This document shows, one piece after another, positions 1,091-52,517 of a stretch of DNA of 64,000 nt; the first letter of the stretch is position 1, and the number at the start of each line of letters is the position of its first letter. The stretch lies in NCBI RefSeq assembly GCF_052425735.1, contig NC_135764.1, positions 31,744,001-31,808,000 of the forward strand, given 5' to 3'. This DNA is from Oculina patagonica (taxonomy: Eukaryota). Below the pieces are notes generated by a model. The model worked only from the letters and a program-made list of their open reading frames with translations. It did no database searches and was not told where the DNA came from. Made by a program: the position numbers and the translations under genes.

Positions 1091-3009
1091 GTAAGTTTGC
1101 TGTCGTTGTGTTGTTCCTATAATTTAAAAAAAAGATATTTTCTTGCACTAGTATAATTTTAAAGGGACCATGTCACGGATTTTAGCCAAACTTAGGCTTA
1201 GGAAATAACCATCAAATTCGCTTAAATATATAAAATAACCTTTTAAAACAGCGAAGGAATATTTAAATGACACACCAAATTCAAAAGAAGGCAAGGATGG
1301 CCAAAAATGTCGAATTTGATAAATTTAATTATTAGTTTTTCATCAAAGCCGATAAAAATTTTACTACTAGTGTGCCTTTTCAAAGGAAATACTAAAAAAG
1401 GAACATTGAATTTGATTGTTATGATTGAAACTTATTACAAATGACAAACTAAATTTTTCAAGATGCGCTTTCCGTTCAGGTTGATCAGTTAATAATAAAC
1501 AGTAGAATCCTTTTTAATTAAGTTTTTGCCGTCAGTGGTAATTTGTTTTGTTTCCGTCGTAGAACATAACCAGCTACTTACAAAAAGTTTTTGTTTCAGT
1601 CATCAACGAGTGTGGCTCCTCACCATGCCGACCTGATCAAGTTTGTGAAGACTTCGTGTGTCGATGTCCTCCAGGAAAGTTTGAAAAAGAAAATGGCAAC
1701 GCCTGTGAAGGTAATCTTTCAAAGCGATTATTGGAATGGGTCTTCTCTAATTTAGTACTCTGCTAAGAATGTTTAAATATTTCCTAATTGCTTTGTTAGA
1801 GGCATTTATGTTACTAGTGCTAGGGCAACAGCGCAAATTCCAACTTGTAACGCGGTAGGAGGATCCCAGGGGGGGGGGGTACTCCGGCTTGTAAATGACG
1901 GGGATGATCGAATGGAGGCAAAACTCAGGACCCAAAAAAATCCCTAAGTCTTCCGACATTACCCAAAAAAATCCCTGGACCAAAAATAACCCCCAAAAAA
2001 TCCCTTGTCAAATTACCCCTAAATTGCCAGCAGGGGCAATAATATAACACAAAGAAAATCATAAAAAAATTGAACACTCGTGTTTGTTTTATTCATCATA
2101 CTATAAATACGCCAAGACCGCGCCAAGGCACTTTAGTTCGTTTTTAATACCCAAAAAAATCCCCTATTTATATCAAGTCACCCAAAAAAATACTTGCCAG
2201 ATTTTCCAACCCAAAAAAATCCCAGAATCGAAAATTTCAAACCCCAAAAAATCCTTCGATCATCCCCGTCATTTACAAGCCGGAGTACCCCCCTGGGAGG
2301 AGGATCCTCTCTTGCTATAGGGCAATAACGATGAGAGATAACTCCTGTGACATACGTTTCACCTGTGTTGTAATATAAGTTCAGACTATTTTGGTGTGAA
2401 TAGATGTCATGCGAGAGAGGCTATGTTAACAATCAATTAATAATAATAAAAATAATTAATAACAATAATAATAATTTAATGCTTATTCGGCGCAAAATAA
2501 CATGTGGATATGATCAAATGCGCCTTACAACAAATTAATTAAAAACCTAAACCATTAATATTTGACATGTTGCTAATAACTGCAAGATATTTCGTATTTT
2601 TAATTTGTAATCTTGGGAAAATGAATTGCTGGCATGAGGTATTCGTGTGAATGGTAACCTCTAAGTGTTGCTTATTAAACATGTTTAGTTAGTGACCGGT
2701 CTGTTGCTATAACATTTAAAGTTATTTTACTCTTATATTTGCGCAGCCGTCGAAGCTTATCAAGGATCGTTCAAAATAACTGGTGGGAACTTCTCGACAT
2801 ACACTCCAAAACTGGCGGACGAGAAATCTCCTGAATATAAAGAGTTGGCTAACAAAGTCATTACAGCGGTAAGAAACTTGAGTGTGTGAAATGTTTCTTT
2901 AACAGATGAGTGACCCTACGTCTTGTTGAGAGATGATCATTATAACATTAAGTGGTAGTAATCGTCTTCACCTATTACATTAATGACAACAACAACAAAA
3001 GTAATGATT

Positions 3010-3040
<31 letters not shown>

Positions 3041-6000: not shown

Positions 6001-9000
6001 TAAGCTCCAGTCTGGCAGTTGATCATAGTACAGGAGCATTGTCTTCAGCGAGGTCTGTGGTGGCTTCGTCACCCGTAGTACTGTCGTCGTCAGTTGCTGT
6101 TTCAACATCGATTGTAATGAACTCCAGTCTGGCTGAAGATCAAGGTACACGCACATTACCTTCATCGAGGTCTTTTGTGGTTTCCTCATCCATAATGCTT
6201 TCGTCGCCAGTCTCAAGCAGCGTGTTTAGCAGCTCACCATCCATTGCAAGGAGCTCGAGTGTGGTAATAGATCAAAGCACATCTGCGTTGTCTTCCGTTA
6301 GTTCTTTTGCGGCTTCATCATCAGGAGTGATTTCGTCGTCAGTTGCTGTTTCAAGCAAGCAGATTATCAGTTTACCATCCATTGCAGTGAGCCCCAGTCT
6401 AACAGTCGATAAAAGTACACAAGCATTGTCTTCAGCAACGTCTCTCCTGGTTTTATCATCTGCGGTGGTTTCGTCGTCAGTAGCTGGTTCAAGCAGCGAG
6501 ATAAGCAGTTCGTCATCCATAGGAGTAAGCTCCAGTCTGGTAGTTGAACATAGTACACCAGCATTGTCTTCAGCGAGATCTGTGGTGGCTTCGTCACCCG
6601 TAATGTTGTTGTCGCCAGTTGCTGTTTCAAGTCCGGAGATTAGCAGCTCACCATCTATTGTTATAAACTCCAGTCTGGCGGTAGATCAAAGTACACGTAC
6701 ATTACCTCCATCGAGGTCTGTAGTGGTTATATCATCCATAGTGCTATCGTCGCAAGTCTCAAGCAGCGAGATTAGCAGGTCATCATCCATTGCAAGGAGG
6801 TCGAGTGTGGTAATAGATCAAAGCACACCTGTGTTGTCTTCTTTGAGGTCTTTTGCGGCTTTATCATCAGGAGAGATTTCGTCGTCAGTCGCTGTTTCAA
6901 GCAAGCAGATTATCAGTTCTCCATCCATTGCAATGAGCCCCAGTCTAACAGTAGATCAAAGTACACATGCATTGTCTTCAACAACGTCTCAACTGGTTTC
7001 ATCATTTGCGGTGATTTCGTCTTCGGTAGCTGTTTCAAGCAGCGAGATTAGCAGTTCAACACCCATAGCAGTAAGCTCCAGTCTGGAAGTTGAACATAGT
7101 ACGCAAGCATTGTCCTCAGCGAGGTCTGTGGTGGCTTCATCATTCGCGATGATGTCGTCGTATGTTGCCATATCAAGCAGGAGAAATGAGCAGTTCACCA
7201 TCCATTGTAACGAGCTTTAGTCTGGCAATAGATCAAAGTAGAGCTCCTTTGTCTTCAGCGAGGTCTTTGTTGTTTTTGTCATCCTCAGTAGTTTTGTCAC
7301 CTGTTGATGTATCAAGTACTTCGATAAGCACTTCACCATCGAAGACAATGAGCTCCAGTCTGGAAATAGATCAAAGCACACGTACACTGTATTTGTCGAC
7401 TTCTCTGCTGGTTTTATCATCTGCAGTGATTTCGTCGATCATTCGTTGTTTCAAGAAGCGAGATTAGCAGTTTACCATCCCTTACAAAAAGGTCCAGTCT
7501 GACAGTTGGGCAAAGTACACCAGCATTGCCTTCAGCTAGTTCTGTAGTGGGTTCATCATCCGAAGTGCTGTCGTCGTCAGTTTTTGTTTCAAGTCGGAAG
7601 ATTGGCAGTTCACCAACCATTGCAATGAGCTCCAGTGTGGCGTTAGATCAAAGTATGCCCACGTTATCTTCAGTGAGGACTGTAGTGGTTTCATCATATT
7701 CAAGTGTCTATCGTCGTCGGTTGCTGTTTCAAGCCTGCAGATTAGCGGTACACCCTCCACTGAATTGCGCTCCAGTCTGGCAGTAGATCAAAGTGCTACC
7801 TGTATTGTCGTCAGACAGGACTGTGGTGGTTTCATCATCTGCAATGATTTCTTCGTCAGTTGGTATATCAAGCAGCGGGATTAGCAGTTCACCATCAATA
7901 GTAATTAGCTCGAATCTGGTAGTAAAGGAAAGTACACCTGCATTGTCTTCATCGACGTCTCTACTGTTGTCATCATCGGCGGGGATTTCTTCATCAGTCG
8001 CAGTTCCAAGTAGGGAGATTAGCCGTTTAGCCTCCATTGCAGTGAGCTCCAGTCTGGGAGTTTATAGAACACCTGCATTGTCTTCTGTTAGGTCTATGGT
8101 GCCTTCATCATCTGGAGTGATTTTGTCGTCAGTTGCAGTTTCAAGCAGGGGGATTAGCAGCTCAACCTTTTTAGTGAGCTCCAGTCTTGGAGGTAGATCA
8201 AAGTACGTCTGCATTGTTTTCAACGAGGTCTGTTGTGCTTTCATCATATCGAGTGTTTACATCGTCAATTGCTGTTTTAAGTAGGGAAATACAAAGTGCA
8301 CCGTCCACTGTAGTGACCTCAAGCCTTGCAACAGATGAAAGTACACCTGCCTTGTCCTCAGCGAGATCTCTGGTGGTTTTATCATCTTCAGTGATGTTGT
8401 CGTCAGTTTCTTTTTCAAGCGGGGAGATAAGCAGTTCATCAACTATTGTAATGAGTTCCAGTCTGACGGCAAATCAAAGTATATCTGCGCTGTCCTCATC
8501 GAGGTCTGTGGTGGTTCCATCATCCGTGGTGATTTCGTCGCCAGTTGGTTTATCAAGCTTTAAGATTAGCCATTCACCATCCGTTTTAACGAACTCTAGT
8601 CTAAGCATAGATCAGAGTAGACCATCATCGTTTTCAGCAAGGTCTACTGTGGTTTCATCATCCGCAGTGCCTTCGTTGTCAGTTGGTATATCTAGCAGGG
8701 GGATAAGCAGTTCGCGATCTATCAGAATGAGGTCTAGTCTGGCAGCAATATCCTCAGCGAGTTCTGTACTTGTTTCATCATCTTCAGTGATTTCCTTGTC
8801 AGTCGCCTTATCAAGCAGTGCGATTAGCAGCTCACCATCCATTTTCATCGGTTCTAGCCTCGTGTTAGATCAAAGTACACCTGTATTGTCTTCAGCGAGG
8901 TCTGCGGTGGTTACATCATCCGTAGTAGTTTCGTTGTCAGTTGCTGTTTCAAGTAGAGATATGAGCAGTTCACCATCCATCGTACCGAGCTCCAGTCTAG

Positions 9001-12000
9001 CAGTAGATCAAAGTACACCTAAATCATCTTTAGTCAGGTCTGTGGCGATTTCATCATCCGCAGTGATTTTGTCATCTGTTGGAGTAGCAAGTAGTGGGAT
9101 TAGCAGTTCATCATACGTTGTAATGAGTTCCAGTCCGGCAATAGATCAAAGTACAGCTATATTGTCTTTAGCGAGGTCTGAGTTCGTATCGTCATCCAAG
9201 GTGATCTCGTCGTCAGCTGCTATATCAAACAGGGAGATGAGCAGTTCAGCATTCCATTGCAATAAGCTCCAGTCTGGTAGTTGAACAAAGTACACCTGTA
9301 CTGTCTTTAGCAAGTTCTGTTGTGGTGATTATCGTCCACCGTGATTTCGTCATCCGTTAATGTATCAAGAAGTGAGCTGAGCAGTTCACATTCCATTGTA
9401 ATGAGCTCCAGTCTGGTAGTTGATCAAACTTTACCGTTATTGTCGTCAAAGAAATCTCTGCTTGTTTCATCATCCGCAGTGATTTTGTCGTCAGTTCCTG
9501 ATTCAAGCAGAGACCTTAGCCTGTCACCTTCCACTGTTATCAACTTCTAGTCTAACAGTAGATCAAAGTACACCTGTATTGTATTCAGCGACGTCTGTTG
9601 CAGTTTCATCCTCAGCAGTGATTTCATCATTCTTTGCTGTATCAAGCAGTGGGAAACACAGTTCACCAGTCACCGTAACGAGTTCCAGTCTAGTGGTAGA
9701 TCAAAGTACAGATGTATTGTCTTCAGCGAGATCTGTGCTTGTTCCATCATTCGCTGTGATTTCGTCGCCAGTTGGTGATTCAAGCAGAGAGCTTAGTCTT
9801 TCACCATCCACTGTTATGACTTCTATTCTGGCAGTAGATCAAAGTACCACCTGTATTGTCTTCAGCGAGCTCTGTGGCTGTTTCATCATCCGTTGTGATT
9901 TCGTCATTCGTTGCTGTATCAAGCAGTGGGATACGCAGTTCACCAGTCATTGAAACTAGTTCCAGTCTGGTAGTAGATCAAAGTACCCCTGTATTGTCTT
10001 CAGCGAGCACTTTGGCTGTTTCATCATCCGTAGTGATCTCGTCATCAGTTGCTGTATCAAGCAGCGCGATAAGCAGCTCACCATCTGTTGTAGTTAGTTC
10101 CAGTCTTTCGGCAGATCAAAATAAAACTGCATCTTCTTCAGCGGGATCGGTGCTTGTTTCTTCATCTACAGTGTTTTCATTGTCATGGTGATGTTTCAAA
10201 CACGGAGATAAGCAGTTCATCGTTCACTCTAATAAGGTCTAGTCTGGCAATGAATCAAAGTACACCTGTTTTGTCTTTAGCGAAGTCTGTTCCGGTTCCA
10301 TCGTCCGCAGTGGTTTTGTCGCCAGTTGCTGTTTCAAGCGGTTCAGAAATAACCCGTTCACCGTCTGTTGTAATGAGATCTAGTCTCGCAATAGATCAAA
10401 CTACACTTGTTTTTTCTTCAGAGAGATCTGTGCTTGTTTCATCACCTGCAGTGATTTCGTCGTCAGTTGCTATATCCACCAGTGAGATTAGCAGTTCACC
10501 ATCCATTGTAATGAGCTCCAGTCTGGCAGTAGAAAAGTACTGCTGTATTATCTTCAGCCAAGTCTTCGGTGGTTTCATTATCGTGGCTGTGAAACTATCG
10601 TCAGCTGTTATATCAAGCCGCAAGATAAGTAGTTTGCCATCTATGAGAATGAGTTCCAGTCTGACAATAGTTCGAAGTACACCAGCATTTTCGTCAGTGA
10701 GATCTGTCACAGTTTCTTCATTGGGAGTAATTTCGTCTTCAGTTGCTGTTTCAAGCAGGGAGATAAGTAGTTTGACTTCTATGGGATTGAGCTCCAGTCT
10801 GGATCCTTCGGCGATTAATCCTTCGAGTACGGTCAGCGTATCAGTCATTGAGTCCTCTATCGGTAAGTTCGCTACAGTATTTTCAGGTTTTTTTTTCCAA
10901 TTTATGTTAAGATTTGCTAGGGGAACTATATTTTTGAGGAAGATCTCTACTTTAACAAATTGCATTACCATGTCGTATCCGGATTTTACTGGTTCGGTAA
11001 GGTAATTTTGTGGAACAGTGGGTCCTACTGGCCGAACCTCGGAGAAATGTTTGATAAACTCAAAGAACTGAACTTACATTGGATTACTCCAAATTTGATT
11101 AATTCAAGAAATTAGTGTTTTTATCGAAGCCTTCAAACGTTTTACTGCTAGTGTGCTTTGTCAAAGAATACAAGATGCAGTAAAACATTAAATCCGTTGT
11201 GTTATGAATAAAGCGATTAAAGTAATCTCTTTTTAACGCGGGCATCTAGTGCTGGTACTACAATCGAAGCTCTCGTAAGCGGACACCCTCGGGACGCGAA
11301 AAAAGTGTCCGCAACTGGAGCTGGCCGCTTACGAGAATGGTTCTCGTAAGCGGCCACTAGAGATGTAAGGGATAGATGGCCGCTTACTGGAGCTTGCCCA
11401 GCTAAAAATAACCGGACGGACGTGGATGACGACAAAACAAACACTGAAATATGGTACTGTAATCGGTACTGTAAAATCATTGTGACGATTGGCGATGTGA
11501 AGTTGATTGATAAAAACAAACAGCGCGGTTGTAAAATAGGATTTTCTTTGGAGTGTCCGCTTACGGGAGCTTAAAAACAAAGAAAAAGTCTAAGTCGTAA
11601 TCTCTGAAGGTGTCCGCGGCCGCTTACGGGAATGTCCGCTTACGAGAATGTAAAGATACAGAGTTTGTATGGGAGTTAAAATGGGGTTTCAAACAAGGCG
11701 GCCGTAAGTAGAGCTGTCCGCTTACGAGAGTGTCCGTTAAGAGAGCTTCGACTGTATTTTCTTAACTATTAAAAAAGTTAAACTTCTTTCTCGGACTTTT
11801 GCTTATCAAAAATTAATATACAGTTTTTATTTTCTATTTTTTTTGATCCTTTGAAAGTTAGTTACTGCCATCAGTTGTAATTTGTTTTGCTCCTTCCATT
11901 TGTCAAATTTGTTCTTAGGTCGGTCTCGAGCATAGGTTTCTTTCTGTTTGTGCATTTAAATAAATTCATTTGAAATTCTTGTAACGTGGCATATATTATA

Positions 12001-15000
12001 AGTATTTGTGAAAACGCTTTTATAGCGTAATGAACATCTTTGTCCTTGGAGCGCTTCCGTAACATTTTTTATAGCTCTGTTGATGATGACCTCCAAGAGA
12101 GTCCAAAGGTCTGTATTAATATACACAATCAATTATTAACAATATTTTGTTTCAGTCATCAACGAGTGTGCCTCCTCACCATGCCGACCTGATCATGTTT
12201 GTCAAGATCACGTGTGTCGATGTCCTCCGGGAAAGTTTGAAAATGAAAATAGCAAAACCTGTGAAGGTAAGTGTTCAAATCGATTATTATAATGACTCTT
12301 CGATTATTCACTACTCTGCTTAAATATTTCCTGATTGCTTTCAAAGAGGATTTTGAATAAATGTTGCTAGCGCTATAGCTATAGCGCGTTAACTTCTTAT
12401 CCCGGGGGAGTGAGACTTTCTATATGGCAATGGCGATAAAAATAAGAATTAAAAGGATGCTGTGACGTACATGTTACGTGTGCTGAAATAAACGTTCAGA
12501 CTCTTTTGGCGTGAATAGATGTTCTGTGAGAAGCTATGTTGACGATTATTATTCTGAAGGTTGGCGATAACTGGGAGCTATTTTCTATTTGGGTTTTCTT
12601 GGCAAATGAGTTGCTGAAACGAGTTTTGCGCGTAAATGGTAACGTTTGTCTCAGTATTGCCTGTTGGTTGGTGTACATGCATAGGGAATGACCAGCCTGT
12701 AACTAATAAAGTGTTTTTACCCTTAAATTTTTGCAGCCGTGGAAGCTTATGAAGGATCATTCAAAATAACTGGTGGGAACTTCTCAACATACACTCCAGC
12801 ACTGGCGGACGAGAAATCTCCAGAATATAAAGAATTGGCTTACAAAGTTATTACTACGGTGAGCAACTCGCGTGTGTAATATTCTTCTTACAGAATAAGG
12901 AAGAAGATTAAACTCTTCCAGAATGTACGTCTAATGCTTTAAAGAAATGAATAAACAACACAAAAACAACAGCAACAGCCGCATCTTATAGTAAAGTAAC
13001 AATTAACAAAAAAAGCTATGTGTATGTTTCGAACATAGCCTTGTTGCTAAAACGAAAAGGGTTAAAGGGACTATGTCGCGGATTTTATCAGATTTTTGAA
13101 TAGCTAAAATTTATATTAGTGTCGCAGGAAACCTAAAATTAATGGTCCATTTTTATTGAAAATTGCTATATTGGACCACTGAAACTGTTGACGGGCATCT
13201 TAGCTGTGGATGGATCGGATTAAAACGGATTGCAACTAAGCTAACGTTTTCAAGTTGTTGCTGCGCGTCATCAAAAAATCGATATTTATAGCCGAAGGTT
13301 GATTTCTATCCGCAAATTAAGGTTATAATTATCTTCCTTTAGATGTTCAAAGATAATGTTTTATGGGTTAAGTTGCCCACCACTTATTTCAAAAGAGTTT
13401 AGATCAAAAGTCTATGAAATGCCCGTGACATAGCTCCTTTAAGAGTTAATCCTCTATGACAAAAGCGTGGGATAGTTTGAAAACAAAGGATTTAAATCTA
13501 TCACCTATGGACGCCCACACACCGATCGGACGCGTGAACCTCTGAGCAACGGAGAAACGCTTGGTAAACTCGGTCATTTTCTTAAAATTGCTAATTAAAT
13601 AGCTTTCATGAGTTAATCTTTTTACTCTGTAGATGGACGAGGTTTACAACAAATCAGAACTGGCTTCAATTTACCAAGGATGTGAGATTCGTAGATTCAG
13701 GTACTGAAGAAAGTTAATGTCTTTATTTTATTTGCCTACCACCAATTTTAGAACAGTTTAAAGGAAATCCGCGAAATCCGCGTGACTTAGCTCCTTCAAG
13801 TACTTAGAATCAGTCCAATTTACCCAGCATGTAATTAAAATAAGTAACCAAAAGACGTGAAAGAAAGCTCGTTTGACGAGTCATAATTTCATTGTTTCTT
13901 GTGTCTGTGTGCCTGTCTTCTTTCAAACTCTCGAAGAATTTTACATGAAGTCAGGAAGAAAATTCATTGTATCCATATATCAAGTGGTTGAAACTGTACT
14001 GTTATCCAAGACTTAAAAGATGTGACGTTTCTATCTTATGTAATTATTTTCATTTCACAAAGTCTATCCGTCAATTAATGTACACGTTTTATATCTTTAC
14101 AGACCAGGCAGTGTAGTTGCTGATTTTGTGGTCAATTTTCAACAAACTGGCAATGCAACCGTACTACCAACAGCCCAGAAGGTTCTTACCGAAAGCGTAA
14201 CTCAGTCCAAAAATACGTCGAGCATTGGAGATTTGCAAATTGAATCAGCATCTGTTAAACTAGAAGGTACGAAACTCCCAATTCTCTTTTCATGAAGAAT
14301 AGGTAAATAGTTCATATATAAATGCTTTTCATGCCATTAACTTTTAAAAAGCTTCCTTGTGATACTTTTTTGCTTTGCTGCAGAATACTTTGTCGATAAT
14401 ATTACAAATTTGTGTCATATGTCTTCAATTATGACCTCACTCAAGGTCAATTATATTTACGAAACACACAGCAAGACCGTACATAATCATTGTAGGCTTT
14501 TTAATTTTACCTTTTTTCTTTTGAAGATCGTGACGAATGTCAAAATGCCAGCACCAATGACTGTGATAAAAATGCCATCTGCAACAACACTGTTGGATCA
14601 TTTGAATGCTTTTGTAAGGAAGGGTTCACTGGAAATGGAAAAACATGTCAAGGTAACGATCACAACAAGTTACAACTTTTGATTTACTTTGTGAGCAATT
14701 CCAAACAGTCTTAATGTGCTTGATGAGGTCATTCCTTCTCTTTATGTAACACCAGCCACGCTGGTATAATTGAACATACTGTACATTACACCATACATGT
14801 GCTATACTGTTTGATCTTTGATTCAAAAGGGGTGCAATCATAGTAATAGACACAGACACACTAAACGACAGAAACATATGCACAGACAGACGGAAACACA
14901 GACACATAGACCATTTAAGACACAAACAGCTAGACTGGCAGACATACATACAGAGAGACAGACAGAGGACAGACAGACAGTCAGACAGACAAAGAGATAG

Positions 15001-18000
15001 GCATGCAGAACAGAGGAAGGAAATACGGACGAACAGAGATATTGACAGGCAGATATTACGAACGTTATTTATACATAGTATTTCCACTCTGGATACAAAT
15101 ATTTTCCATTTATCACCTTCAGGGATTTCGTCGCCAAGCAGTTCACCAACCTTTGAAATGAGTTTCAGTATGGCGGTAGATCAAAGTACACCCACACTAC
15201 CTTCAGCGGGGTCTGTGGTGGCTTCATCATCCGTTTTGCTATCGTCGTCAGCTGCAGTTTCAAGCACGAAGATTAGTAGAAAACCTTCCGTTGTTTTGAG
15301 TTCCAGTCCCTCCACTGTAATAAGTTCTAATTTTTCTTCAAAGAGGTCTCTACTGGCTTCATCCTCCGCCATGGCGTCAACTTCAGTCGCTGTTTCAAGA
15401 AGCGCGATAAGGAGTTCGCCATCGGTGAGAATGAGTTCCAGTCTGGCAAAAAATCAAAGTACACTGTCATTGTCAAAAGCGAGGTCTGTGATGGGCTCAT
15501 CATCTGGAGTGCTCCTGTCGTCAGTCGCTGTTTTAAGCAGCGAGATTAGCAGTTCATCCATCGCAATGAGCTCCAGTCTGCCAATAGATCAAAGTACACC
15601 CGTATTGTCTTCAGCTAGGTCTGTCGTGGATTCATCATCCGCAAAGATTTCTTCGTCAATGGCTATATCAAGCAGGGAGATTAGCAGTGTAACATCCATT
15701 GTAATAAGTTCCATTTCGCCAACAGATCAAAGTACACCAACATTGTCTTCATCGAGGTCTCTCCTGTTTTCGTCATTCTCGCTGGTTTACTCGTCCATGG
15801 CTGTATCTGGCAGTGAGACAAGTAGTTTGCCATCGCGGAGAATTAGCTCCAGTCTGGCAATAGATCAAAGTTCAACTGCATTGTCTTCAGCGAGGTCTCC
15901 ATTGGCATCATCATCGGCAGTGGTGTTTTCATCAGTTAATGTATCCAGCAGTGCGATAAGCAGTTCGCCATCGACGAGAATGAGTTCCAGTCTGGTAAAA
16001 GATCAAAGTACACTTGTATTGTCGTCAGCGAGGTCTGTGGTGGTTTCATCATCTGCAGTGATTTCGTCCTCAGTGGCAGTTTCAAGCAGCGAGGTTAAAA
16101 GTTCTCCATCCATCAGAATAAGCTCCAATCTCACAATAGATCAAAGTACACCTTCATTATCATCAGCAAGGTCTTCGGTGGCTTCATTATCGGAAGTGGT
16201 TTCGTCGTCAGTCGCTGTTTCAAGCAGGCGGATTACCAGTTTACTATCCACTGCAATGAGCCCCAGTCTAGCAGTAGATAAAAGTACACTTGTATTGTCC
16301 TCGGCGACGTCTTTGCTGGTTTCATCATCTGCAGTCATCCCGCCGTCATTCGCTGTTTCAAGCAGCGAGATTAGCAGTTCATCATTCATTGCAATAAACT
16401 CCAGCCTGGGCGTAGATCAGAGTACGGCTGAATTGTCTTCACAGAGGTCTTTGATGGCTTCATCCTCCGCCACGGAGTTCACTTCAGTTGCTGTTTCAAG
16501 CAGTGCGATAAGGAGTTCGCTATCAGTGAAAATGAGTTCCAGTCTGGTAGTAGATCAAAGTACACCTGCATTGTCTTCAGTAAAATCTTTATTGGCTTCG
16601 TCATCTGTAGTGGTTCTTTCATCAGTTGCTGTTTCAAGCAGTGCGATAACGAGTTCGAGAATGAGTTCCAGCCTGGCAATAAATCAAAGTAGTCCTGCAT
16701 TGTCCTCAGCGAGGTCTGTGAAGCTCTCATCATCTGGAGTGATTCTGTCTTCAGTTGCTGTTTCAAGTAGGCAGATCAGCATTTCGCCATCCATCGTAAT
16801 GAGCTCAAGTTTGGCAGTAGATGAAAGTTCGCCTGTATTGTCTTCGACAAGTTCTGTGTTTTTGTCATCGTCTGCCGTGATTTCCGCGTCAGTCGCCATG
16901 TCTAGCAGGGAGATTAGCAGCTTAACATCCATTGTAACAAGTTCCATTCCGGCAACAGGTCAAAGTACTCGTCCATTGTCTTCAGGGAGGTCTCTGCTTG
17001 CTTCGTCATCCGCAGTGGTTCTTTCATCAGTAGCTGTATCAAGCAGTGAAATTATCAGTTCTCCTTTGACGAGAATGAGTTCCAGTGTTTCAATAGAACA
17101 AAGCATATCAGTATCGTCTACAGCAAGGTCTCTACTGGTTACATCATCCGAAGTAATTTCTTCGTCTGTCGCTGTTTCAAGCAGTGATATCAGTAGTTCA
17201 CGATCCATTGTAATGAGCGCTAGTCTGGCAAGTACATCGTCTTCATTGACGTCTGCGATTGTTTCATCATCTGCATTAGTTTTGTCATCAATTGCTACTT
17301 TAAGCAGCGAGAGAAGCAGTTTGCCATCGGTGAGAATGAGCTCCAGTCTGGCAACAGATCAAAGTACCGCTGCATTGTTCTCAACGGGTTCTTTGGTGGT
17401 TTCTTCATTTGGAGTTATTTCGTCTCTAACTGCAGTTTCAATCAGAGAGAAAAGTAGTTCGCCATCTTTGGAAGTGAGCTCCAGTGTGGATTCTTTGGCG
17501 ATTCATCCTACAAGTACGATCAGTTTGTCAGTCGTTTCGTCCTCTATTGGTAAGTTACTTCGCTGTTTTTTTTGTGTATTGAATGGAATTAAATATTATT
17601 TAAAAGAACTTATTACCATTTTGCATCCGGATTTCACTGGTTTTGTGTTTGATGAATTTTTTGAAATGTGACCTTGAATGAATCGTTCATCGAATATCTC
17701 TATTGAATATGTATTTGTTTCGTTTTCCTGAAACTTTTTGATGAATTTATTTAAAATGCTTGGGAAGACGACAGCTTTATTGACTATACTCCAAGGTCAT
17801 ATTTCTTTGTGGTTGAAGAGCTTGTGTATCATTGATATCACTGATAGATCTCTGCAGTATAGACTATCAACGACTCACATTAAGTTTTTGTTTCAGTCAT
17901 CAACGAGTGTGCCTCTTCACCATGCCGACCTGATCAAGTTTGTGAAGACTTAGTTGGAGATCACGTGTGTCGATGTCCTCCAGGAAAGTTTGAAAAAGAA

Positions 18001-36109: not shown

Positions 36110-39075
36110 TTACTTTTTGCCCATGCAACACGTTGGTGCGCATGACGGAGCACAAACTGGCATTGGGGGAGGGGGTGGTGGGGGAGGGAGCATAATTGGT
36201 TGAGGGGGTGCAGTGCAGCACGGCTGAGGACAGATTCTCATACAGTAGTGGATACAAACAGGTGGACATGCTGGCGGGGGTGGTGCTGGGAGACCGGGGC
36301 AACCGGGGGTTCCCATCGGTCCCATTGGTCCCATAGGTCCCATGCATCCTGGCATACCGGGGAGTCCACGACATCCAGGGAGGCCTGGGGGTCCCATGCA
36401 TCCTGGCTGGCCGGGAGGTCCTGGAATAGGGCAGGGGACAGGACAAGGTGGCGGCGGTGGTGGTGGAGGTGGCGGAGGAGGAGGGGCACAGCATGACGGT
36501 ACACAGGCCGGAGCACACGAAGCAGCGCATCCCAAACCACAGGGGTTTGCGTTACGCTTCTCTACAGTTTCTGTGAGTAAATAAAAGGAAGCAGATGAAA
36601 AATAAGGTCAAGACATGCTATTGGTAATGTATGGTCAAATTCAGTATTATTCATTGAACACTTGGCATTTGACACCCCTCGGCATTGGAGTTTGACTGGA
36701 AAAATTCCCCTTACTTTACCGTTGACGATTTAATTTGTATACACATGTAACTGATAGTGACGTTGCTTAGACTACAACGAAGGTATATGTTAAACTAAAC
36801 GTAACTGATTTTTAAGTAATTGTTTTTATATTTGTTAGCAGGTCATTTTACCTGGCTCATCTTCGACTTCTTTCGTTATTTTGACGATCTTTCCATGATG
36901 AAGGTAAGCCTCAGTAACTGTAAAAGTACAGGTTTAAACAATGTTAAAATGTAAAAGGTAAAGGTACACCTGGGTGGCGAGAGGCACTGTGAAAATTAAG
37001 CCGTCCTACTCAAGGACACAACAGACAGTGACTCTGGTCAGGGCGTGAACCCAGACCGTTCGGTCAGGAGTACAGTGGACTAACCATTAGTCAACTACGC
37101 CTCCCAATGTTTAAATACTTACGGCCAATTCTCTTCTTTTGTTTGACAGTTGAAATCTATGTGGAAGAGTTTCGAAATAACACTCAGAACGCGTTGAGAG
37201 AAATATGGGGCGAGTTATTCTGTGACGTCATGTCAACTGAATTTCTGTAGCAAGATATTTTCGATTCTCTGTTAGATTGTGATCGTGATTCCTGTAGCGA
37301 TTCCGGGTTCCTTTTTTTAATATTAGCTGTACCTTATTTCTAACTCATACTCATAATTCCGGCATCATAAACTATGATCTTTATCAGAACAGGTGTGCTT
37401 GAACACCTTTTCAAAAGGTGTTGTGCTGCCACTGTTGCGAACCGTTTAATTTAATCCAGGACGTGTAGAAAAGGCGTTACATCTCACACAAAAGTGTTTA
37501 ACCAGCCACAACTTACACGCCGTTCAGAAGAAACCTTCAAAATAGCTAGGGACAACTTTTAAGTTAGTGCTTAAAAGCACGTATTTGTTTGAGTTATTAC
37601 TGATTTCACAGTTTGTAGACCAAAACCCGGGGCAGAAACTTTTCAGCATGGGGTCTAAGAAGGTTTTACTCACATGGATACTGAAACAATGGTCGTCTCA
37701 GATTAAAGTTCGCTTCGCCAATTGGTGCGCGCTAATTTCACATACCACTGATTACTCTGGTATTGGCGACAGAAGGTATGAGTTCTCAGTGAATCCACTA
37801 CAGCGTATAATCACCGTGTATCCTTACTCATGGTACCCGCTTGTTAAACCAAACTATTTCGAATAACTCAAAGATGTCCTTTAAGTCTGTTTACTGTGAA
37901 CAAGAACCCTGCGAACGTGACCATCGAATCGCTAAACTCTTTTTGTGGGTTGCTTCTCAGATAGGCTTTAAAAAGATCTGCTTCTAGCTATTTTCTACGA
38001 AAGTCCACATAATTTGCAAATTCATGTTTTCTTTTCTTTTGTTTCTATCACCAATTTGGACACTACCGGTAATCCAGACTTGATTTCAACATTAAAGGCT
38101 TGCGTTTTTAAATCGCGTCAAGTTTTCTATTCGTAGTTACCAAATTGAACAAGCCGAATCTGAATCACAAAATCCATTTTTCAACCTAAGCAGTGTAATA
38201 CTAATGAGACGCAATATTTGGATTTCCCGAAGTTTTTCGTTTTGCAAGAAGTAGTACTGTTTAGTTTGTTTCAGTTTCTCGCCATTATAAAGCAACAACC
38301 TGTCCAAAAGTAAACATGATTCACTCACCGCGTATTCCAAAAGTTATTGCAAAGCTCTTAATATATCGGTATGACAACAGATTTTGGGCTCCAGAGAAAA
38401 CAGTAATTTTAACACAAGATTTCAGTCTATGACAAAATGATCTTTTCCCGGCTCTTTGCTAAGTCTTTATTTTTTCGGGTTGGGTACAGGTGTTAAGCGC
38501 ATAAACGCAACACCTGTTTGTTTCGATTTTATTGTTACAAGGAAAGTGTAATTATCTGCAATCACCTTAGATTCTAAACAAGATCAGATTCCAAATTAGA
38601 TTCTACAAAAAAGTCATTTTAATTCACAGAACGGCCTGATAAAATACTAAACAAATACGGCAAAATATATATACCGCCATCTACACTTTTCAGTAAAATA
38701 TCACAAGGCGAAATAATAAAAATGTCAACACTTGTTTTGTGCACAGACAAGAGAAAATGTACGTGGATAGCCGTCTCTTCGTTTTGCTAATCGTTTTCAA
38801 ATTACGTTTCTAAATTAGTTGTTCAATGTTTCTGCCGGCGCCTATCTCGAAAGAAAGTTTGATCTACGAAGAAAACCTAAAATGGATTGCATGTTTATGT
38901 CAATATACCAGTTAAAATCATTATATTGACATTTGATACCGTTTAGCTTTTCCAGCTGAAATCACAGAGATAAAAGGGATACATTTACTGGCCAGGATAA
39001 ATAAACAAACTAACCTTTCCGTGCTTCCAGCGAAGCAATAAAGAGGAATAAACAAGCAAGCGTTACTCGAAACAT
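36110..39075 (-). CDS. Ncol: Minicollagen (nematocyst wall protein), ~195 aa
   Basis: Exons 39075-39015 (signal MFRVTLACLFLFIASLEARK), 36917-36852 (propeptide, phase 1-1) and 36570-36110. Mature part: EKR^NANP, CRD CGLGCAASCAPACVPSCC, polyPro, 15 Gly-X-Y, CRD CPPVCIHYCMRICPQPCC, polyPro, short CRD CAPSCAPTCC. The upstream exons are less certain than the main exon. Confidence 0.9.
36955..37105 (-). mobile_element. tRNA-derived SINE fragment
   Basis: CCTGGGTGGCGAGAGGCACTGTG...CAAGGACACAAC...GGGCGTGAACCCAGACCG; B-box-like GGTTCACGCCC on the minus strand; similar to 44165-44415 and 57590-57810. Confidence 0.7.
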
Positions 39076-42044: not shown

Positions 42045-42849
42045 ATGGACTTAAGAATTCTTCTTGTATCTTGCCTTGTGGCAGTAGTATGCGGAAAATC
42101 AATTGGTAAGGAATCACTATATTGTTTTTAATTACTACTTCTTCTTGAGGATGTGGAGATTCGTAGGACGTTCAGGAGAAAAATGCAACACTACGATAAG
42201 TTAAACTAGCACAGTCAAACATCGCTTTACGGACACCCAATTGATGCAGTGGTTTTGGTTCCTTCCTCATACATTCTCTTACTTTAACTCTTTTTAAGCG
42301 CACGGCTCGCTAAAATGGACATTTCTGTGGTACCTACGGTGCTCGTTAAACGAGATCTTGCAAAATGTGTAACTTCACTTTGCTGTTTACCTTGCAGATG
42401 AAAAAGAAAAGCGAGAAGCTAACCCTTGTGGTTATGGATGCCCATCAATGTGTGCTCCAACCTGCGAACCAACATGCTGTGCACCACCACCGCCACCACC
42501 TCCACCACCATGCCCCGTCCCCGTGCCTATGCCAATCCCCTGCCCACAGCCAGGACCCCCCGGACAGCCAGGATGCATGGGACCACCCGGACTTCCCGGA
42601 TGCCGTGGATTCCCCGGCATGCCCGGATGTATGGGACCAATGGGACCGATGGGACCACCAGGAGCACCCGGATGCCCCGGTCTCCCAGCTCCACCCCCAC
42701 CACCGTGTCCCCCAATCTGTATTCACCACTGTATGAAGATTTGTCCTCAGCCATGCTGCTCTCCTCCACCCCCTGTGTATATCCCTCCTCCTCCTCCCCC
42801 TCCAATGCCAGTTTGTGCCCCATCCTGTGCTCCCGCCTGTTGTAAATAA
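42045..42849 (+). CDS. Ncol: Minicollagen (nematocyst wall protein), 170 aa
   Basis: Exon 42045-42105 (signal [20 protein letters not shown], donor G|GTAAGG) and exon 42398-42849: DEKEKR^[25 protein letters not shown], polyPro, 15 Gly-[23 protein letters not shown], polyPro, [11 protein letters not shown]. Confidence 0.95.
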
Positions 42850-45010: not shown

Positions 45011-45559
45011 TGTTTATTGACTTTATTAGCTTTCATCACTGTCACTGATAATATAATTCGCCGTTTTGAAATCTGTTTCTGCTCAAACTCACCGCTTTTT
45101 TGATTTCTGATCGCGAAGTCTTGCAGTTCGGCAGCTGCAATTTCTTGATTTTCCCTCTCTTCGTCTCCACAAGCTAGAAGCTCTTATAATTTATAATTTT
45201 CTTCTTCGTGTTAGCATATTTTCCTGCTCCTCAGTAAAACATTTTATTTTGGCTTCAGTGAACTTCATGAATCGATAGCTCGCCATTTCCAACCGGCGTT
45301 TGGCAGCCTTGCACAAACAACCGTGCAAAGGCGGGAAATGACGTCATCGATTTCGTCACTAGTGAGGATATGGGAAATAGGCCACTACAGTCCCGGATGC
45401 AGTTTCGTATGAATTTTACGAGTGGTCTATTTTCCAGTAAAACACTCGCGGCTATATAATAATAAACGATAAACAACTCAGCCTTCTTTTCAAACTATTT
45501 TATTTAGGAACAAAAACCTAACATGTTTAGGATAACTGTCAAAAACAGCGAAGGTTTAC

Positions 45560-46864
45560 TCAGTGAGTAATTTTGCTCTTTTTGTCTTGTTCTTTATCGT
45601 TGTCCTCATGGTGGTCTTCTTCTTTAGCTTTCTGTTCTTTCGTCTCTGTTGGGACGTGTGTCTCGCACCCTGGATACCCGCAGTTATTGTACCAGTAGTT
45701 GTATCCGTAGGGGTAGTGATACGGGTACGGGTAGTTGTAAGGGTAGTGGTGTGTGTCGGGGTGCTGTACAGTCACAGCTGGGTGTACAGTTACTGAAGCT
45801 GGGTGTACTACTGTTGTTGCGGGGTGCTGGACTGCTGGATGGACTGCAGGGTGGACTGCTGGGTGCTGGTATGGGTAAGGGTAATGATACGGGTAGCCGG
45901 GGTGTTGATACGGATATTGTCCGTAATGCCACGGGTATCCGGGATGTCCATATCCAGGGTAATAGACATCGTTGGATTGTCCTAAAAAATGAAAGAAACG
46001 GTTGTCATTTCACCTTTAGTTTACTTTACAGGGCTGCAAAAACCAGTATTCAACAAACGTTAGATAGAATATAATTGTTAAAATGGTGTGTGGTGGTTTT
46101 TTTTTTAATGCTTTCGTCATCTGACAGAAGTTGCGATGAATAAGAGAGTCTCGAACACAAGCAAGGGACCTGGGGAGAAGAACAGGTACCCGCCCATCGT
46201 ATTATTTCTCACTTCGCAGTTTTATAGGATTTTAGCTGCTTTGAAGGATAAAATAAGGATTTTTTTGTAATAAAGTATTCCTTTGGGCTTTTTTTTTGCA
46301 AAGATAAAATCAAGCACGCTTCTTTTTTTGACAAATTCTGTCGACTGACTTAAGGCCAAAACCAATCGGCCAGTGGCCAATCAGAACAAACGAAAATAAC
46401 ACAATTAACCAATTAAGTAACAGGGTACGTAGCGCGGGAAAACTGACAACCGGTGTCAGGCGTGCGAAAACATGTAACCAGTTTTAAGCGCGGGAAAACA
46501 CAGTTGGTTCTCGTTTGTATCTAATCGGATGAACAATTGTTTGGTTGCAGGGACTTTGAACGAGTTTTCTGACAAATTTAACAACTCAGCAATGACAAAC
46601 TCAAATAAAACATACGCTTATGCGTAGGTTTAACAATTATTCAATTCCTCTACAGTTGCAGCTTTTGCACTATCTTCTTGATATACCTTTCTTGTCTTGG
46701 TCCTGTTTCACTTCATCTGATTGGCTCTGAAAACTGACTTGCTGCGCAGACTCGGCGGGGTTAACTTGATTAGCATTAACCTCCAAAGAACTGAGAGCCC
46801 TGGACTCAACTGCAACGAAACACACCACTGCCAACAGGCAACCAATCACAACTGAAGTCCTCAT
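45560..46864 (-). CDS. Uncharacterised secreted Tyr/His/Pro-rich protein, 199 aa
   Basis: Exon 46864-46687 (signal MRTSVVIGCLLAVVCFVAVES, polar propeptide ending QDQDKK, donor G|GTATAT) joins exon 45981-45560 in phase 1 (600 nt total). Sequence: GQSNDVYYPGYGHPGYPWHYGQYPYQHPGYPYHYPYPYQHPAVHPAVHPAVQHPATTVVHPASVTVHPAVTVQHPDTHHYPYNYPYPYHYPYGYNYWYNNCGYPGCETHVPTETKEQKAKEEDHHEDNDKEQDKKSKITH*. AATAAA at 45504-45499; candidate UTR donor at 47778. Confidence 0.85.
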
Positions 46865-49706
46865 GTCTAAAACAAAACAAAAAAAACACAACCATCGATA
46901 TTAGCATTAGGTATAGATATAACGTAATTTATTAAACATGTTTTTAAGGGACAGCAGTGTCCCGGCTGATATATCTTATTTTAAAAGTATGACCGTTGGC
47001 TTGCTATAAACTTGCTTTATTATCTTGCAATAGAAAGAAAGAAAAACACCCTGAATGTGGTGAAAGCAAAGAAATCTCAACTTAAAAGAAAAATGGATAC
47101 GTAATGATTAAAATATTCAGAATTTCCTGAGAATGAAAGTTTTGATTTTTTCTCATCCTGACACAAGATCAAATTTTATGAACTGTAATCCACTTCCATC
47201 CTTGCAATCCTATACTTCTTCCCCAAAATATTTGTTCTATTTTAAGCATTCAATATTTTCTTGTTTAAAATCTATTGCAGCGCAGCCGAGATGGAAGTTT
47301 TTGCTTACAGTTCTATACATCCACCAATATCGACATTTAAAATAACTACATTACTAACTAAAATATTAATTTTACTGGTAGTGACAGGGATCAGACTATA
47401 ATTGAAGATATTTTGGAAAAAACTGCTACGAAATAGGAAATTAAATAGATTATAAATATAATTAGTACTCGCGGACAACTTGATTCGCTTTTTAAAAATT
47501 ATTTAGACAAGATTTTTTAAAGGCTATGAACACGTATGCTATTCGAAAAGAGGTAGTGAAACGGCGGCTCATAGAAATATATTTACCTTCCCTTGTTAAG
47601 CATTTTAAAAAAAAGCTAGTTTGAAAAGCCTACAAAAACTGCTTGATTCAAACTTTGGACATCAGCTGAAAAATAGGCACTCGCTACGATACACTTATGG
47701 TTTCTTACTGAAAAATTACACGACTCTATTTTTATTATCCGAACGTAGAATGATTTAAAACAAGAAGCTGAACTTACCAATTCCTTTCTACCTCCGATAC
47801 GCTTCTACTGCGAATTCCAACAAACTCTGATGAATGTCTTTGATTGATAGGAATTTAAGAAATAATCACACACCCCTACTGAAAAATAAAGCCCTTTGAT
47901 TGGCTTATTACTAAGTATTATGTCAACTGAAAATTGTGAACGCGTGAAAAGACAAGCGATCACTGACGCCTGCTGTCGATGAGGACACAATTTGTTTGGT
48001 GTCTAACACTTGAAACGATAAACAAAATATTTGTTAACGAACACACCCAAACATCAAAAAAGTGTTGAATAACTCACGGATTTTGTTTTAATTTATCAAC
48101 TGTATTAATAAAATGTTTGTTTTGAGTAGAACAATAAAGATTAGGCATATCACGTTCGAAATGAAAATTCGATTTATAAATACACGTATTTTAAAGGTAT
48201 ATTTTAATTTGACATACTTGTAAAGCAGGAACTAAGAGGTCATTTGATTAAGTGACCTCTCTAAAATGCCTGGGCCTTTGAAAATTAAATTTAACTCAGA
48301 ACTGACAAAAACATAAACAATTAGAACAGAAAAAAAAGCTGTTCTGCAATGCTTGTAATTTCGGGTTGAAAAAGCTAGAGATAAGAGTATGAAGTTATAA
48401 CACCATTGAGGAGATTCGTAATTTTAGTGACAAAACAGGTTTTTCGCATTCCTTACGTCGATGTGAAGGAAAAGGTTGTTGCTTGTATTAAAATTTCCAA
48501 ATGTGCTTCTTTCTAATTTTAGGAAAATTTATAGTGAACACAATCAATCAAATGTTGTGGCTCGCATTTTAAAAACGAAAAAACCAATTTACTGCTTCAA
48601 ACCAGAAAACTCCCAACAGAAAAAAGAACATGAACAAAGAACAGTGATTATTACAAACATAAATAAGAGATTTTTATTTCTGTTTTGTGTTTGGATTTTG
48701 AATATTTTGCTATAAAGTTATTGCCCTTTTATGCGTTTAATTAAATCTTACTAACTATGGTCCGACGAAAGGCTAACGTTCTAAATATCCGCCACGCTTG
48801 TTAATTTACGTTTAGAATTTATTTCCCTGCCAGTGAGATAAAACAATTCAGTTTTTTCTAAATTTTATAATATTTCTCAATTAATGACTGAGTTGTTTGT
48901 ACGGCCAATGGAGAAACCACAACTTAGAGAGAGCCTATGTGAAAGATAGTCTTCCATATTTAGATTGAACAGTGAACAGCTTATGGTCGGAAACGGCCGT
49001 GTATTTGAAAGGCCCCATGCACTTGTCACCCGCGGGGTTTGTCCCGTTCAAGATCACGACCACAAGCGGGACATCCCTAAATTACGGGTTTGACATACTT
49101 TGTGTGAAATCTCCAAACGTTCGTACACAATGAAATGAACTGTACCTTGACAAACAATTTTTATTACGCACAATTTACTCCAAGTAGATAGCAAAACAAA
49201 AAACATTAGTAATCAACACAATAAATTCTTAAATAACAAAATGCAAGCAACATGGCACGTTTGTGACAACCAAAGTAGCATAAGAGGGCTATCAGATTCA
49301 CAAAATTTATTGAACATAACGCCCTTGCCTGGATTTTTAACGTTTTACTAAGCAGTTATTTACAAGTCGTTAACCACTAAAATAAAATCAAATTTTTGCA
49401 CATTAAGTACAATGTTACGTTAATGAATATTTTAAAATTTATTCACATAGTGCTCGACAAAAAGAGCAAAGGACTTTACAGGGGTAAAAAATAACTTGAG
49501 CGACGCCCTTTCAGGGGTTGGATTTAAATTTGCCAACGAGCACGCACCTCCTTTTCATAAAAGAGTCCACCCCCTCTCCCCAAACTCGGAATTAAAAAAA
49601 ACCATTTTGTGAGGCAAGTTATTGATACCCAACCGTCATAAAACTGTTTTCGACAAATAAACAGCAATTCCTTAAATATCACTGATATGCAGTGACATAT
49701 TTCTTA

Positions 49707-50230: not shown

Positions 50231-52517
50231 TTAATAACTGTTTGTAGTAGGGGGAGACCAGTATTCCATTTCCTGCTCTTGGCCCTGTGAGGTATTGAAG
50301 CACTGCAGGAGCCCATTATGTGCTCCTGAGCACTGGCGATAGAAGTAGCTATTAGGAACTTCCATGTAAGCACTCTGTGGTGCTGTATTTTCGATGTAGT
50401 GCGGCATAGAGACTGGCATCATACAGGTCGTTTTATTCACTGTGGATTCCATCTTAAGCCTCAATCGGTACCGTTTATTCTTGAACCAGTTCTATAAGAT
50501 AAAAACACAGCTACATTCAGAATAAACGTTGTAGGATGCTCGACTCTGCAACATGCTGCAAGAATACACGTTTGCATTTTGCGCCCGAGGTGTGAAATGT
50601 ATCAGGTATCATCCCTTTTTCATGTAATAAAGAACTTTACCTTACTGCATAGCAGGAAATTACAAACCTGTAGCACTTGCTTTGTTATTCCCAGTGCAAC
50701 AGCCACCTCCGTCTGCTGGATGGGGGTCAAGTAAGGTGACGACTCAAACGCTCGCTTCAACACTTGTTTCTGATATTCACTCAATCTTGTGCGTGTTTGT
50801 CTCTTTGAGGAACAAACAGTGACCTGATCTGCGGCCTCACCTTTAAGGAAATTCATTTCAAAGCATAAATTATTTTGTGTAGCTTGCGACATAATCATCT
50901 CCTAATCTCTTATTAGGGAAGAACCATTAGAAATAACCGGAGGGGGGGGGGGGGGGTAAAAAATTTTCCGTGCAGGAATTTTTTTTGAAGGCCTACTTGT
51001 CTGCAGGAATTTTTTTTCTGAGGCACAAGCTTTGCACGAATTTTTTTTTCACCCAAAAATAAAGGTCTTGTTTTGTAACGCATCTATGATTTGCGCAACA
51101 ATTATCATTATTAAATAGCATTATTGTTTCATTTTTTCAGATTCGTTCTATGAATTAAGCGACATTTAGGGACCGTTCATTTTTTATGCCATAGGTAGGG
51201 GAGCTGAAGGGATTTGATAGATAGTGCCTGTTAAATATAATCCCCCCTCCTTATTAGAAATTTTTACCCTAGTCCCTCAACAAAAAAGATGACAGCTAAA
51301 ACCTATCAAGCTAAACTTTAGAATATCAGACAAAATTGCAGTTTAAAGTGATAATAATAATACTGTTTGTGCTTTTGGTTAACTGTTTACTGATGGGACG
51401 CGATTGTTAGGGTGGGTCATATGTGTTTGCAACCAAATTAGTTGATAGGATTCAGCTGATGCTGTTCTCTCGGTACATGACAAATTAGAGGGGTCCGGGG
51501 GCATGCTCCCCCGGGAAAATTTTAATTTTCAGAACCTCAGAAACGCTATTTTAGCCATTCTGATGGACGTTTATAGATGCCAACATACAACACTTACAGG
51601 TTATTCCGTTGCACGAATTTTTTTTCAGGCACAACCGCTTGCAGGAATTTTTTTTCGACAAGTTTTCCTTGCAGGAATTTTTTTTTGGTAAAAGTCACCC
51701 CCCCCCCCCCCTCCGGTTATTTCTAATGGTCCGTCCCTTAGAATATTAGATGTGTTCTTGGGTTAGGCGAGTGTGAGTTTAAATCAAATCAAATCACATT
51801 TTATTTTAAACACATAACACCAAGGAGTACGTAGATTTCTCGTTTGAATGTGTACAAGTGTCTAAAAGTAAAAATCAATTTTTATTTCAAAATTTAAAAC
51901 GATGAAAATTATTATCGATATTTATAATTAATATTTACAAGTAAATATTTAAAATATATAATAATATAAAAGTCGCAAATTACAGGTACTAAGCTTTAAG
52001 CCATGTAGGCTTTAAGAGATATTATTTGATACTTTTGCACTGACGTCTCATCAAACGAAGACAATTTTTAATTATTTTTACATTGTATAAGTATACTTTT
52101 TTTTACATTACTGATTTAAAAAAAGCATATGTTAAGGTCAATCGCACGAGGACGCAACTTCATCTGAAATTGGTTTAGTCAAATCTGCTTAAAAGAATTC
52201 ACGCCGCTCACTAAAATATTATGTAATGCTATAGAAGACAGAGAGAAATTCTCCAACACGTGTCAGTGAATTAAGTAAATTGGGATAACGCTTGCGTATT
52301 TTAAAGTACCATCGAAATGGGTGACAGAAAAACAAAGGTTGTTTTATCGTGAAAAATATTTGTTTTTCTATGCTGATTTCCTAAAATAAATCAAAATTCT
52401 TTGCTAGTTTGGATGACATAACTAACCTGACGATGCGTTCTGGTCGAATAGTTGAGCATCATCTGAACTGGAAGCACCTACATTTACAGATAGTGGCCGT
52501 TTGGAACATTCTGCCAT
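50231..52517 (-). CDS. Divergent K50 homeodomain transcription factor (PRD-class-like), 174 aa
   Basis: Exons 52517-52427 (MAECSKR..., donor G|GTTAGT), 50840-50668 and 50491-50231 join in frame. Homeodomain KRQTRTRLSEYQKQVLKRAFESSPYLTPIQQTEVAVALGITKQVLQ|NWFKNKRYRLRLKM with R5, L16, F20, W48, F49, K50, N51, R53; phase-0 intron between residues 46 and 47. Confidence 0.88.
50916..51737. mobile_element. PIF/Harbinger-type MITE (TTA TSD) in homeobox intron 1
   Basis: TTA|GGGAAGAACCATTAGAAATAACCGGAGGGGG ... CCCCCTCCGGTTATTTCTAATGGTCCGTCCC|TTA; subterminal TGCAGGAATTTTTTTT repeats. Confidence 0.88.

Follow-up and report, generated by a model that had tools for sequence, protein, structure and literature searches.

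The 64,000-nucleotide stretch of Oculina patagonica DNA analyzed here, referred to as the window, contains a spliced and transcribed gene for a 199-amino-acid protein of about 19 kDa with a tyrosine-, proline-, and histidine-rich core. This gene, called the Tyr/Pro/His gene in the following, represents an uncharacterized and poorly annotated sequence family. Our tentative reading, held with somewhat less than even confidence, is that its product is a secreted, disordered, pH-switchable, and self-assembling matrix protein that is restricted to stony corals and deployed in a program separate from that of the adjacent minicollagen A.

RESULTS

Gene structure and transcript

The gene is located on the minus strand and consists of two exons (Table 1). 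Its intron starts with a GTATAT donor at 46686 and closes with a polypyrimidine-TAG acceptor ending at 45982, and the codon formed at the junction is GGA. Transcript evidence was obtained by comparing four public runs of related corals with the locus. These data revealed that (i) a 585-nt contig of public RNA run X4 carries the 46687-45981 junction, with a skip of precisely 705 bases that is bounded by GT..AG on the minus strand and with 180 letters on the shorter side; (ii) the word depth in run X1 amounts to 2,600 to 16,000 in the exons versus about 26 in the intron; and (iii) the 3' end of the X1 contig is situated 12 nt past the AATAAA signal. An earlier interpretation made from the letters alone (the sequence-only reading) had chosen the 46687-45981 junction beforehand as the test of its gene model and had pointed out that the gene is visible only in pieces in the list of open reading frames (ORFs). 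Both points were borne out: the junction is present, and the ORF list, which is based on bacterial-style ORF calling, shows nothing but fragments of the gene.

TABLE 1 Positions of the Tyr/Pro/His gene, the parts of its product, and the neighboring minicollagen genes in the window
Feature	Position	Strand	Remarks
Exon 1	46864-46687	-	178 nt from the ATG at 46864; last base 46687
Intron	45982..46686	-	Phase 1; 705 nt; GTATAT...TTTTTTAG; skipped exactly in the X4 contig
Exon 2	45981-45560	-	
3' UTR	45487..45559	-	AATAAA at 45499-45504; X1 RNA contig ends at 45487
Signal peptide, 21 aa	46802..46864	-	Hydrophobic core; ends in VES, followed by R; kept in 5 of 5 spliced gene models
Polar N-region, 38 aa	46688..46801	-	Gln/Ser/Asn/Ala-rich; ends in DKK; possible propeptide; from translation
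Tyr/Pro/His/Gly block 1	45866..45964	-	YYPGY...YPW...YPYPYQ; many invariant columns (Y15, W17, Y19, G20, YPY, YPYQ)
Central His-Pro-Ala-Val (H-P-A-V) block, 40 residues	45746..45865	-	Length varies between species; indel-rich alignments
Tyr/Pro block 2	45683..45745	-	YPYNYPYPYHYPYGYNY...; from translation
CGYPGC	45665..45682	-	Sole two cysteines of the mature protein; from translation
Charged tail, 34 aa	45563-45664	-	Lys/Glu/Asp/His; contains QDKK; ends in DKKSKITH; stop codon 45560-45562
Minicollagen A	42045..42849 (exons 42045-42105 and 42398-42849)	+	Pfam Collagen, E 4e-8; convergent, 2.7 kb from the Tyr/Pro/His gene
Minicollagen B	36110..39075 (exons 39075-39015 and 36570-36110)	-	Beyond minicollagen A, 6.5 kb from the Tyr/Pro/His gene

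Upstream of the coding sequence (window region 46865-47071), an AG acceptor precedes the start codon by 2 nt and is kept in all five orthologues described below, the upstream regions of which can be aligned only over the last 30 nt or so. The Stylophora gene model joins a 13-nt coding mini-exon to this AG (L001 10001-10013 and 10957-10964); unlike this model, the abundant X1 contig continues colinearly with the genome over at least 180 nt ahead of the ATG. Two further segments, 45300-45482 just 3' of the gene and 46459-46519 within the intron, have a word depth of 10,000 to 160,000 in runs X8 and X9, with many loose ends, and are probably copies of a high-copy interspersed repeat.

Protein architecture and composition

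The architecture proposed by the sequence-only reading, namely, a signal peptide, a polar region, a core of three blocks, CGYPGC, and a tail containing QDKK, was found in full at the positions given in Table 1. For comparison, we used five spliced models, corresponding to the window and the four orthologues with both exons, to which the orthologue L005 adds exon 2 (the main exon) as a sixth sequence. Signal-peptide cleavage is predicted after V-E-S according to the -3/-1 rule. In the N-region, the motifs SRAL, QQ(V/L)xFQ, and (S/A)DExK recur across orthologues, and its dN/dS values are 0.12 to 0.21. The region ends in KK in the window, L008, and L004 and in ASK in the pocilloporids but never in KR, and the N-terminal basic pair, which is not a conserved feature, is at best a putative cleavage site. 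Of the release by cleavage at flanking dibasic sites that had been suggested earlier, only the putative C-terminal site, DKK, is invariant, whereas the N-terminal one does not extend to the pocilloporids.

The 100-amino-acid core in the window contains 23% Tyr, 20% Pro, 14% His, and 8% Gly, a composition that is far from chance. The Gly content is 6 to 8% when the orthologues are included, and the cores of the five spliced models comprise approximately 77 to 104 residues with 19 to 26 Tyr, 16 to 23 Pro, and 8 to 14 His. They contain no Lys, at most one Arg, and either no or one Asp/Glu, resulting in a calculated charge of around 0 at pH 7 and of +7 to +12 at pH 5. An AlphaFold2 model based on the six-sequence family alignment had a mean pLDDT of 46 and contained neither secondary structure nor a fold. 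The earlier suggestion that the protein might coacervate is in agreement with our data, in that the composition suits a self-associating material and no fold is predicted. At the DNA level, the H-P-A-V block is made up of tandem repeats with periods of 12 (3.2 copies) and 21 (2.3 copies).

The remaining parts differ in their conservation. The motif of block 2 is common to the window, L008, and Stylophora (L001), while L006 has a six-residue deletion and L004 and L005 have substitutions. CGYPGC, previously listed among the characteristic features, is likewise present in the window, L008, and Stylophora; its first Cys is replaced by Arg in L006, L004 has an altered motif, and L005 lacks it. Neither of the two most divergent orthologues has kept the cysteine pair unchanged. 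In contrast, YPW, YPYQ, YNY, GYP-G, and the terminal D-K-K-x-x-I are invariant, the D-K-K and the following Ile of the tail being found in six of six sequences. Retrieval to the endoplasmic reticulum by a KKXX-type C terminus was considered and ruled out, since a membrane span is lacking and the C-terminal lysines occupy positions -4, -6, and -7.

A sequence family found in stony corals

We recovered five orthologues, all of them in stony-coral data: Stylophora pistillata PFX33202.1, pocilloporid-like Logan contigs, a TARA Pacific coral metagenome scaffold, another coral metagenome scaffold (L008), and the Logan contig L005. Their proteins share 61 to 73% pairwise identity with that of the window, and the four orthologues with both exons have the phase-1 intron at the same position, with intron lengths of 82 to 1228 nt. 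The dN/dS values of 0.08 to 0.19, obtained at dS values from 0.9 to above 2 (saturated), indicate that this low-complexity sequence is under clear purifying selection. The gene is single copy in its own 529-Mb genome, a search of which revealed no paralogue.

The closest named relative, and the only one, is a Stylophora "hypothetical protein" (AWC38_SpisGene1856; PFX33202.1; UniProt A0A2B4SX76; LSMT01000014.1:43803-44415), which is a true orthologue with 70% identity over the aligned full length. It shares with the window the signal peptide, the polar N-region, the three-block core, CGYPGC, a DKKS tail, and the phase-1 intron; it differs in having a shorter central block, an intron of 82 nt, and an N-region that ends in ASK instead of DKK. 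No mention of the Stylophora gene names and accessions was found in the literature searched. The introns of pocilloporids measure only 82 nt (L001 11143-11224; L006 781-862), as opposed to 705 to 1228 nt in the window, L008, and L004. Prokaryote-style gene callers consequently read through these short introns, which accounts for the 55 near-identical frame-shifted "proteins" of Logan cluster P0011.

Several searches were conducted to place the family. (i) A Pfam scan of both exons returned subthreshold noise only and no family. (ii) An exhaustive profile search of 1.84 billion representative proteins retrieved the family itself and a single spurious match to a 2,147-aa low-complexity protein; no relatives were detected in sea anemones, octocorals, or medusozoans. 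As the proteomes of sea anemones, octocorals, and hydrozoans are among the proteins searched, either the family is confined to stony corals or its members elsewhere have diverged beyond recognition. (iii) Word-indexed protein searches with single sequences and profiles returned the coral orthologues and two unrelated Tyr/Pro/Gly low-complexity proteins only. (iv) A search with the propeptide alone identified no paralogues; besides the query, it matched three orthologue-derived sequences, two of which are read-through ORFs from pocilloporids, the third being the exon-1 ORF through which L008 was found. (v) The best score in an ESM Atlas feature search was 0.79, which is uninformative. The view that the protein is unrecognized, expressed in the sequence-only reading, is therefore in agreement with the Pfam and profile searches.

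Linkage to two minicollagen genes

Minicollagens are characterized by a central stretch of about 12 to 16 Gly-X-Y triplets and by N- and C-terminal (CX3)4CC domains that are flanked by polyproline. The two genes next to the Tyr/Pro/His gene both encode an EKR propeptide end, (CX3)4CC domains, poly-Pro, and 15 Gly-X-Y triplets, which confirms the minicollagen neighborhood noted previously. Linkage is kept in Stylophora, where the trio has the same order and relative orientation as in the window; the minicollagen pair is found there at L001 12346-13330 and 16111-18688. Each minicollagen also has a third, truncated Cys motif of 12 protein letters after the second poly-Pro tract.

All three genes follow one exon plan, in which a phase-1 intron separates the exon for the signal peptide from a single main exon. 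The Tyr/Pro/His protein resembles the minicollagens in being proline rich and in sharing their locus and two-exon plan, but it lacks the Gly-X-Y run, the (CX3)4CC cysteine-rich domain, and the poly-Pro tract; in a six-frame scan, Gly-X-Y runs were found in the two neighboring genes only and not in the 199-aa product. The cores of the signal peptides are alike (GCLLAVVCF at 46822-46848 and SCLVAVVCG of minicollagen A at 42069-42095, with the common pattern CL[LV]AVVC), and both exons end in phase 1. This likeness could reflect a shared ancestry of the signal exon or merely the composition of signal peptides, and a claim of homology to the minicollagen A signal peptide was dropped because the stretch is too short. 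On the other side of the locus, the ORF 50623-50898 on the minus strand matches a homeodomain (Pfam PF00046; E 5.9e-8; profile positions 1 to 46 of 57), the domain being truncated at the exon end; it probably represents one exon of a homeobox gene located some 4 kb upstream of the Tyr/Pro/His gene.

Expression in comparison to minicollagen A

To assess coexpression, we compared in public coded runs the share of words of the Tyr/Pro/His locus with the share of words of the minicollagen A main exon (Table 2).

TABLE 2 Shares of locus words in public runs
Run(s)	Tyr/Pro/His gene	Minicollagen A
X8-X12 (DNA-like)	0.26-0.28	0.28
X25 (DNA-like)	Matched in minicollagen search only	0.28
X13 (closest run to window)	0.01	0.70
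X14-X17 (study P2)	Not among listed matches (under 0.05)	0.58-0.66
X4 (study P2, spliced contig)	0.28	Not among listed matches
X1-X3, X5 (study P1)	0.24-0.33	<=0.11
X22, X23 (study P1)	Not among listed matches	0.09

The DNA-like runs carry both loci equally, which calibrates the method. The RNA-like runs dissociate, indicating that the Tyr/Pro/His gene is switched on and off between samples independently of minicollagen A; these shares are based on sampled 31-mers in assembled contigs, and the RNA status of the coded runs is a guess. Since any DNA run from the same species would have to contain both loci, the dissociating runs are unlikely to be DNA. In X1 of study P1, the depth of the Tyr/Pro/His gene is in the thousands. 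The gene thus does not seem to be switched together with the nearer minicollagen, and these whole-run data argue against the cnidocyst role that the sequence-only reading had proposed. Minicollagen A could nevertheless be specific to one cnidocyte subtype, and the minicollagens of Nematostella have been reported to differ by cnidocyte and capsule type (bioRxiv 10.64898/2026.06.23.733813). An assignment of cell type from run depth was ruled out, since the runs compared were all contigs.

DISCUSSION

Proposed mode of action

The mechanism that we infer, from the secretory route and the pH switch to cross-linking and the site of deployment, would be the following. In an acidic secretory compartment, the 8 to 14 histidines of the core would be protonated and would keep the protein soluble. 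Upon release to a pH of at least 8, as in sea water or at a calcifying or adhesive interface, the core would become uncharged, and its Tyr and Pro residues could act as "stickers" that drive self-association or coacervation. The charged ends would serve as handles for solubilization or surface binding, and a later cross-linking of Tyr or His, either oxidative or via metals, could harden the material. With its predicted disorder, its abundance of aromatic residues and His, and a core without fixed charges, the protein has the compositional traits of pH-responsive, His/Tyr-rich coacervating structural proteins, which are a functional class and not a homology family. Expression that is strong but on/off and uncoupled from minicollagen A makes an extracellular material specific to a stage, tissue, or condition more likely than a capsule component that is made constitutively. 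Candidate sites would include a layer at settlement or at the skeleton interface, a cuticle-like coat, an adhesive, and a wound seal.

Alternative roles

The conserved minicollagen linkage and the shared exon plan count against this matrix reading, as they point toward a role in the cnidocyst. According to this alternative, a serious rival that we nevertheless regard as less likely than the matrix reading, the protein would be a structural component made in one class of developing cnidocytes, such as spirocytes or stage-specific nematocytes; the N-terminal pro-region would sort it into the capsule vesicle, and it would be built into the tubule, the spines, or the wall, where its His/Tyr/Cys chemistry would harden part of the capsule as a functional stand-in for Hydra spinalin. 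The evidence for a capsule role comes from the conserved minicollagen linkage only, that is, from two genes at a few kilobases' distance whose order and orientation relative to the Tyr/Pro/His gene are kept in Stylophora, and even this adjacency carries little weight, since coral genomes preserve local gene order well. Other properties are compatible with it. Like many capsule proteins, the Tyr/Pro/His protein has a polar region after the signal peptide; capsule structural proteins are typically taxon restricted (PMC2687796); and no direct orthologues of spinalin have been found in Nematostella, the barb proteins of which are unresolved (PMC9205923). In proproteins targeted to the cnidocyst, an acidic propeptide ending in Lys-Arg follows the signal peptide; here, the signal peptide is followed by a conserved polar region that ends in KK or ASK, in contrast to the EKR of both minicollagens, and neither the basic pair nor the cysteine pair is conserved. 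Furthermore, relatives are missing from sea anemones, octocorals, and medusozoans, although all of these animals have cnidocysts, and RNA-like runs rich in minicollagen A lack the Tyr/Pro/His transcript and vice versa. The latter observation is not fatal, since cnidocyte types differ in their minicollagens and robust spirocytes come first in a coral embryo (bioRxiv 10.64898/2026.06.16.732747). A narrower version, which we consider more doubtful still, takes the gene and the two minicollagens as a conserved cnidocyst cluster specific to stony corals, with the protein as a hardening component of one capsule type, either the spirocyst tubule or the nematocyst spines. Expression would then be confined to the time at which that type is made, which would also explain the uncoupling from minicollagen A in bulk RNA.

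Two further proposals concern the site at which the protein acts. As a special case of the matrix reading, calcifying cells may deploy it as an organic matrix protein that is associated with the skeleton or with the settlement stage. At the high pH of the calcifying space, the Tyr/Pro core would give rise to an insoluble framework, with the acidic, Lys-containing tail in contact with the mineral; the Gly/Tyr-rich framework proteins of mollusc shells are an analogue. The occurrence of the family in stony corals only, the strong on/off differences between samples, a core that is neutral at pH 8 and above, the charge of the tail, and an S-x-E site that four of the five spliced models (window, L001, L004, and L006) have in their N-region are in line with this proposal. 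It is nevertheless improbable in our view: none of the coral skeletal matrix proteins in Swiss-Prot proved similar in a profile search, the acidity of the tail is mild and is nearly lost in the TARA orthologue, and the Stylophora orthologue (PFX33202/SpisGene1856) does not occur in the text and the supplementary tables that were consulted of a paper on the Stylophora skeletal proteome (PMC7115838). This absence is weak evidence, since the core contains no tryptic sites. Very improbable, finally, is a precursor of a His-rich host-defense or metal-binding peptide that would be processed and act in mucus or wounds or, in a variant, a tyrosine-rich substrate for sealing of the phenoloxidase type. 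The prepro-like layout, the His-rich core that is cationic below pH 6, and expression that is on or off among samples from a single study, which would be typical of an induced gene, would fit such a precursor; however, the core, with no Lys and at most one Arg, carries no charge at the pH of sea water, its roughly 100 residues of Tyr/Pro are unlike known antimicrobial peptides, and the processing sites are not conserved. Weighing these data, we retain the extracellular matrix protein as the tentative reading.

The gene is short, easily missed by annotation, and strongly constrained, and it is among the most deeply covered transcripts in some samples. To our knowledge, few lineage-specific structural proteins have been described for stony corals beyond the skeletal acid-rich and galaxin groups, nor has an anthozoan counterpart of the Hydra spine protein been described. 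If the protein is part of the capsule, it would fill a gap in cnidocyst biology; if it makes up an extracellular layer, whether during settlement, at the interface with the skeleton, or in wounds, it would be a biomaterial protein new for corals and would also serve as a convenient stage marker.

Comparison with spinalin and hardening proteins

The sequence-only reading had drawn a parallel to Hydra spinalin, which is cited as a spine protein (PMC9205923, PMC2687796). Both proteins are of low complexity, His rich, and taxon restricted, and the Tyr/Pro/His protein, like spinalin, is predicted to be secreted. Spinalin is Gly rich, whereas the core described here is rich in Tyr and Pro and has a Gly content that is too low for a Gly/His-rich protein, and the profile search of 1.84 billion representative proteins detected no sequence relationship between the two, so that the parallel is reduced to one of composition. 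Localization to the capsule has been shown for spinalin, whereas for the Tyr/Pro/His protein it is a proposal. A further likeness lies in the charged terminal regions that spinalin reportedly has.

Hardening or adhesive proteins of other animals include the His-rich proteins of squid beak, mussel foot proteins, the proteins of the Nereis jaw, and the Gly/Tyr framework proteins of molluscs. The squid-beak proteins and other marine glues are soluble when protonated, condense at sea-water pH, and can be cross-linked. By analogy, and not by homology, the Tyr/Pro/His protein may operate according to the principle common to the squid-beak, mussel, Nereis, and mollusc proteins. The chemistry of the repeats differs, with YP/YH dipeptides and H-P-A-V in the coral protein as opposed to GHGxY or Lys/DOPA decapeptides elsewhere. 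The sequence family is uncharacterized, whereas the kind of protein, a Tyr/His-rich secreted material of low complexity, is already known from other phyla.
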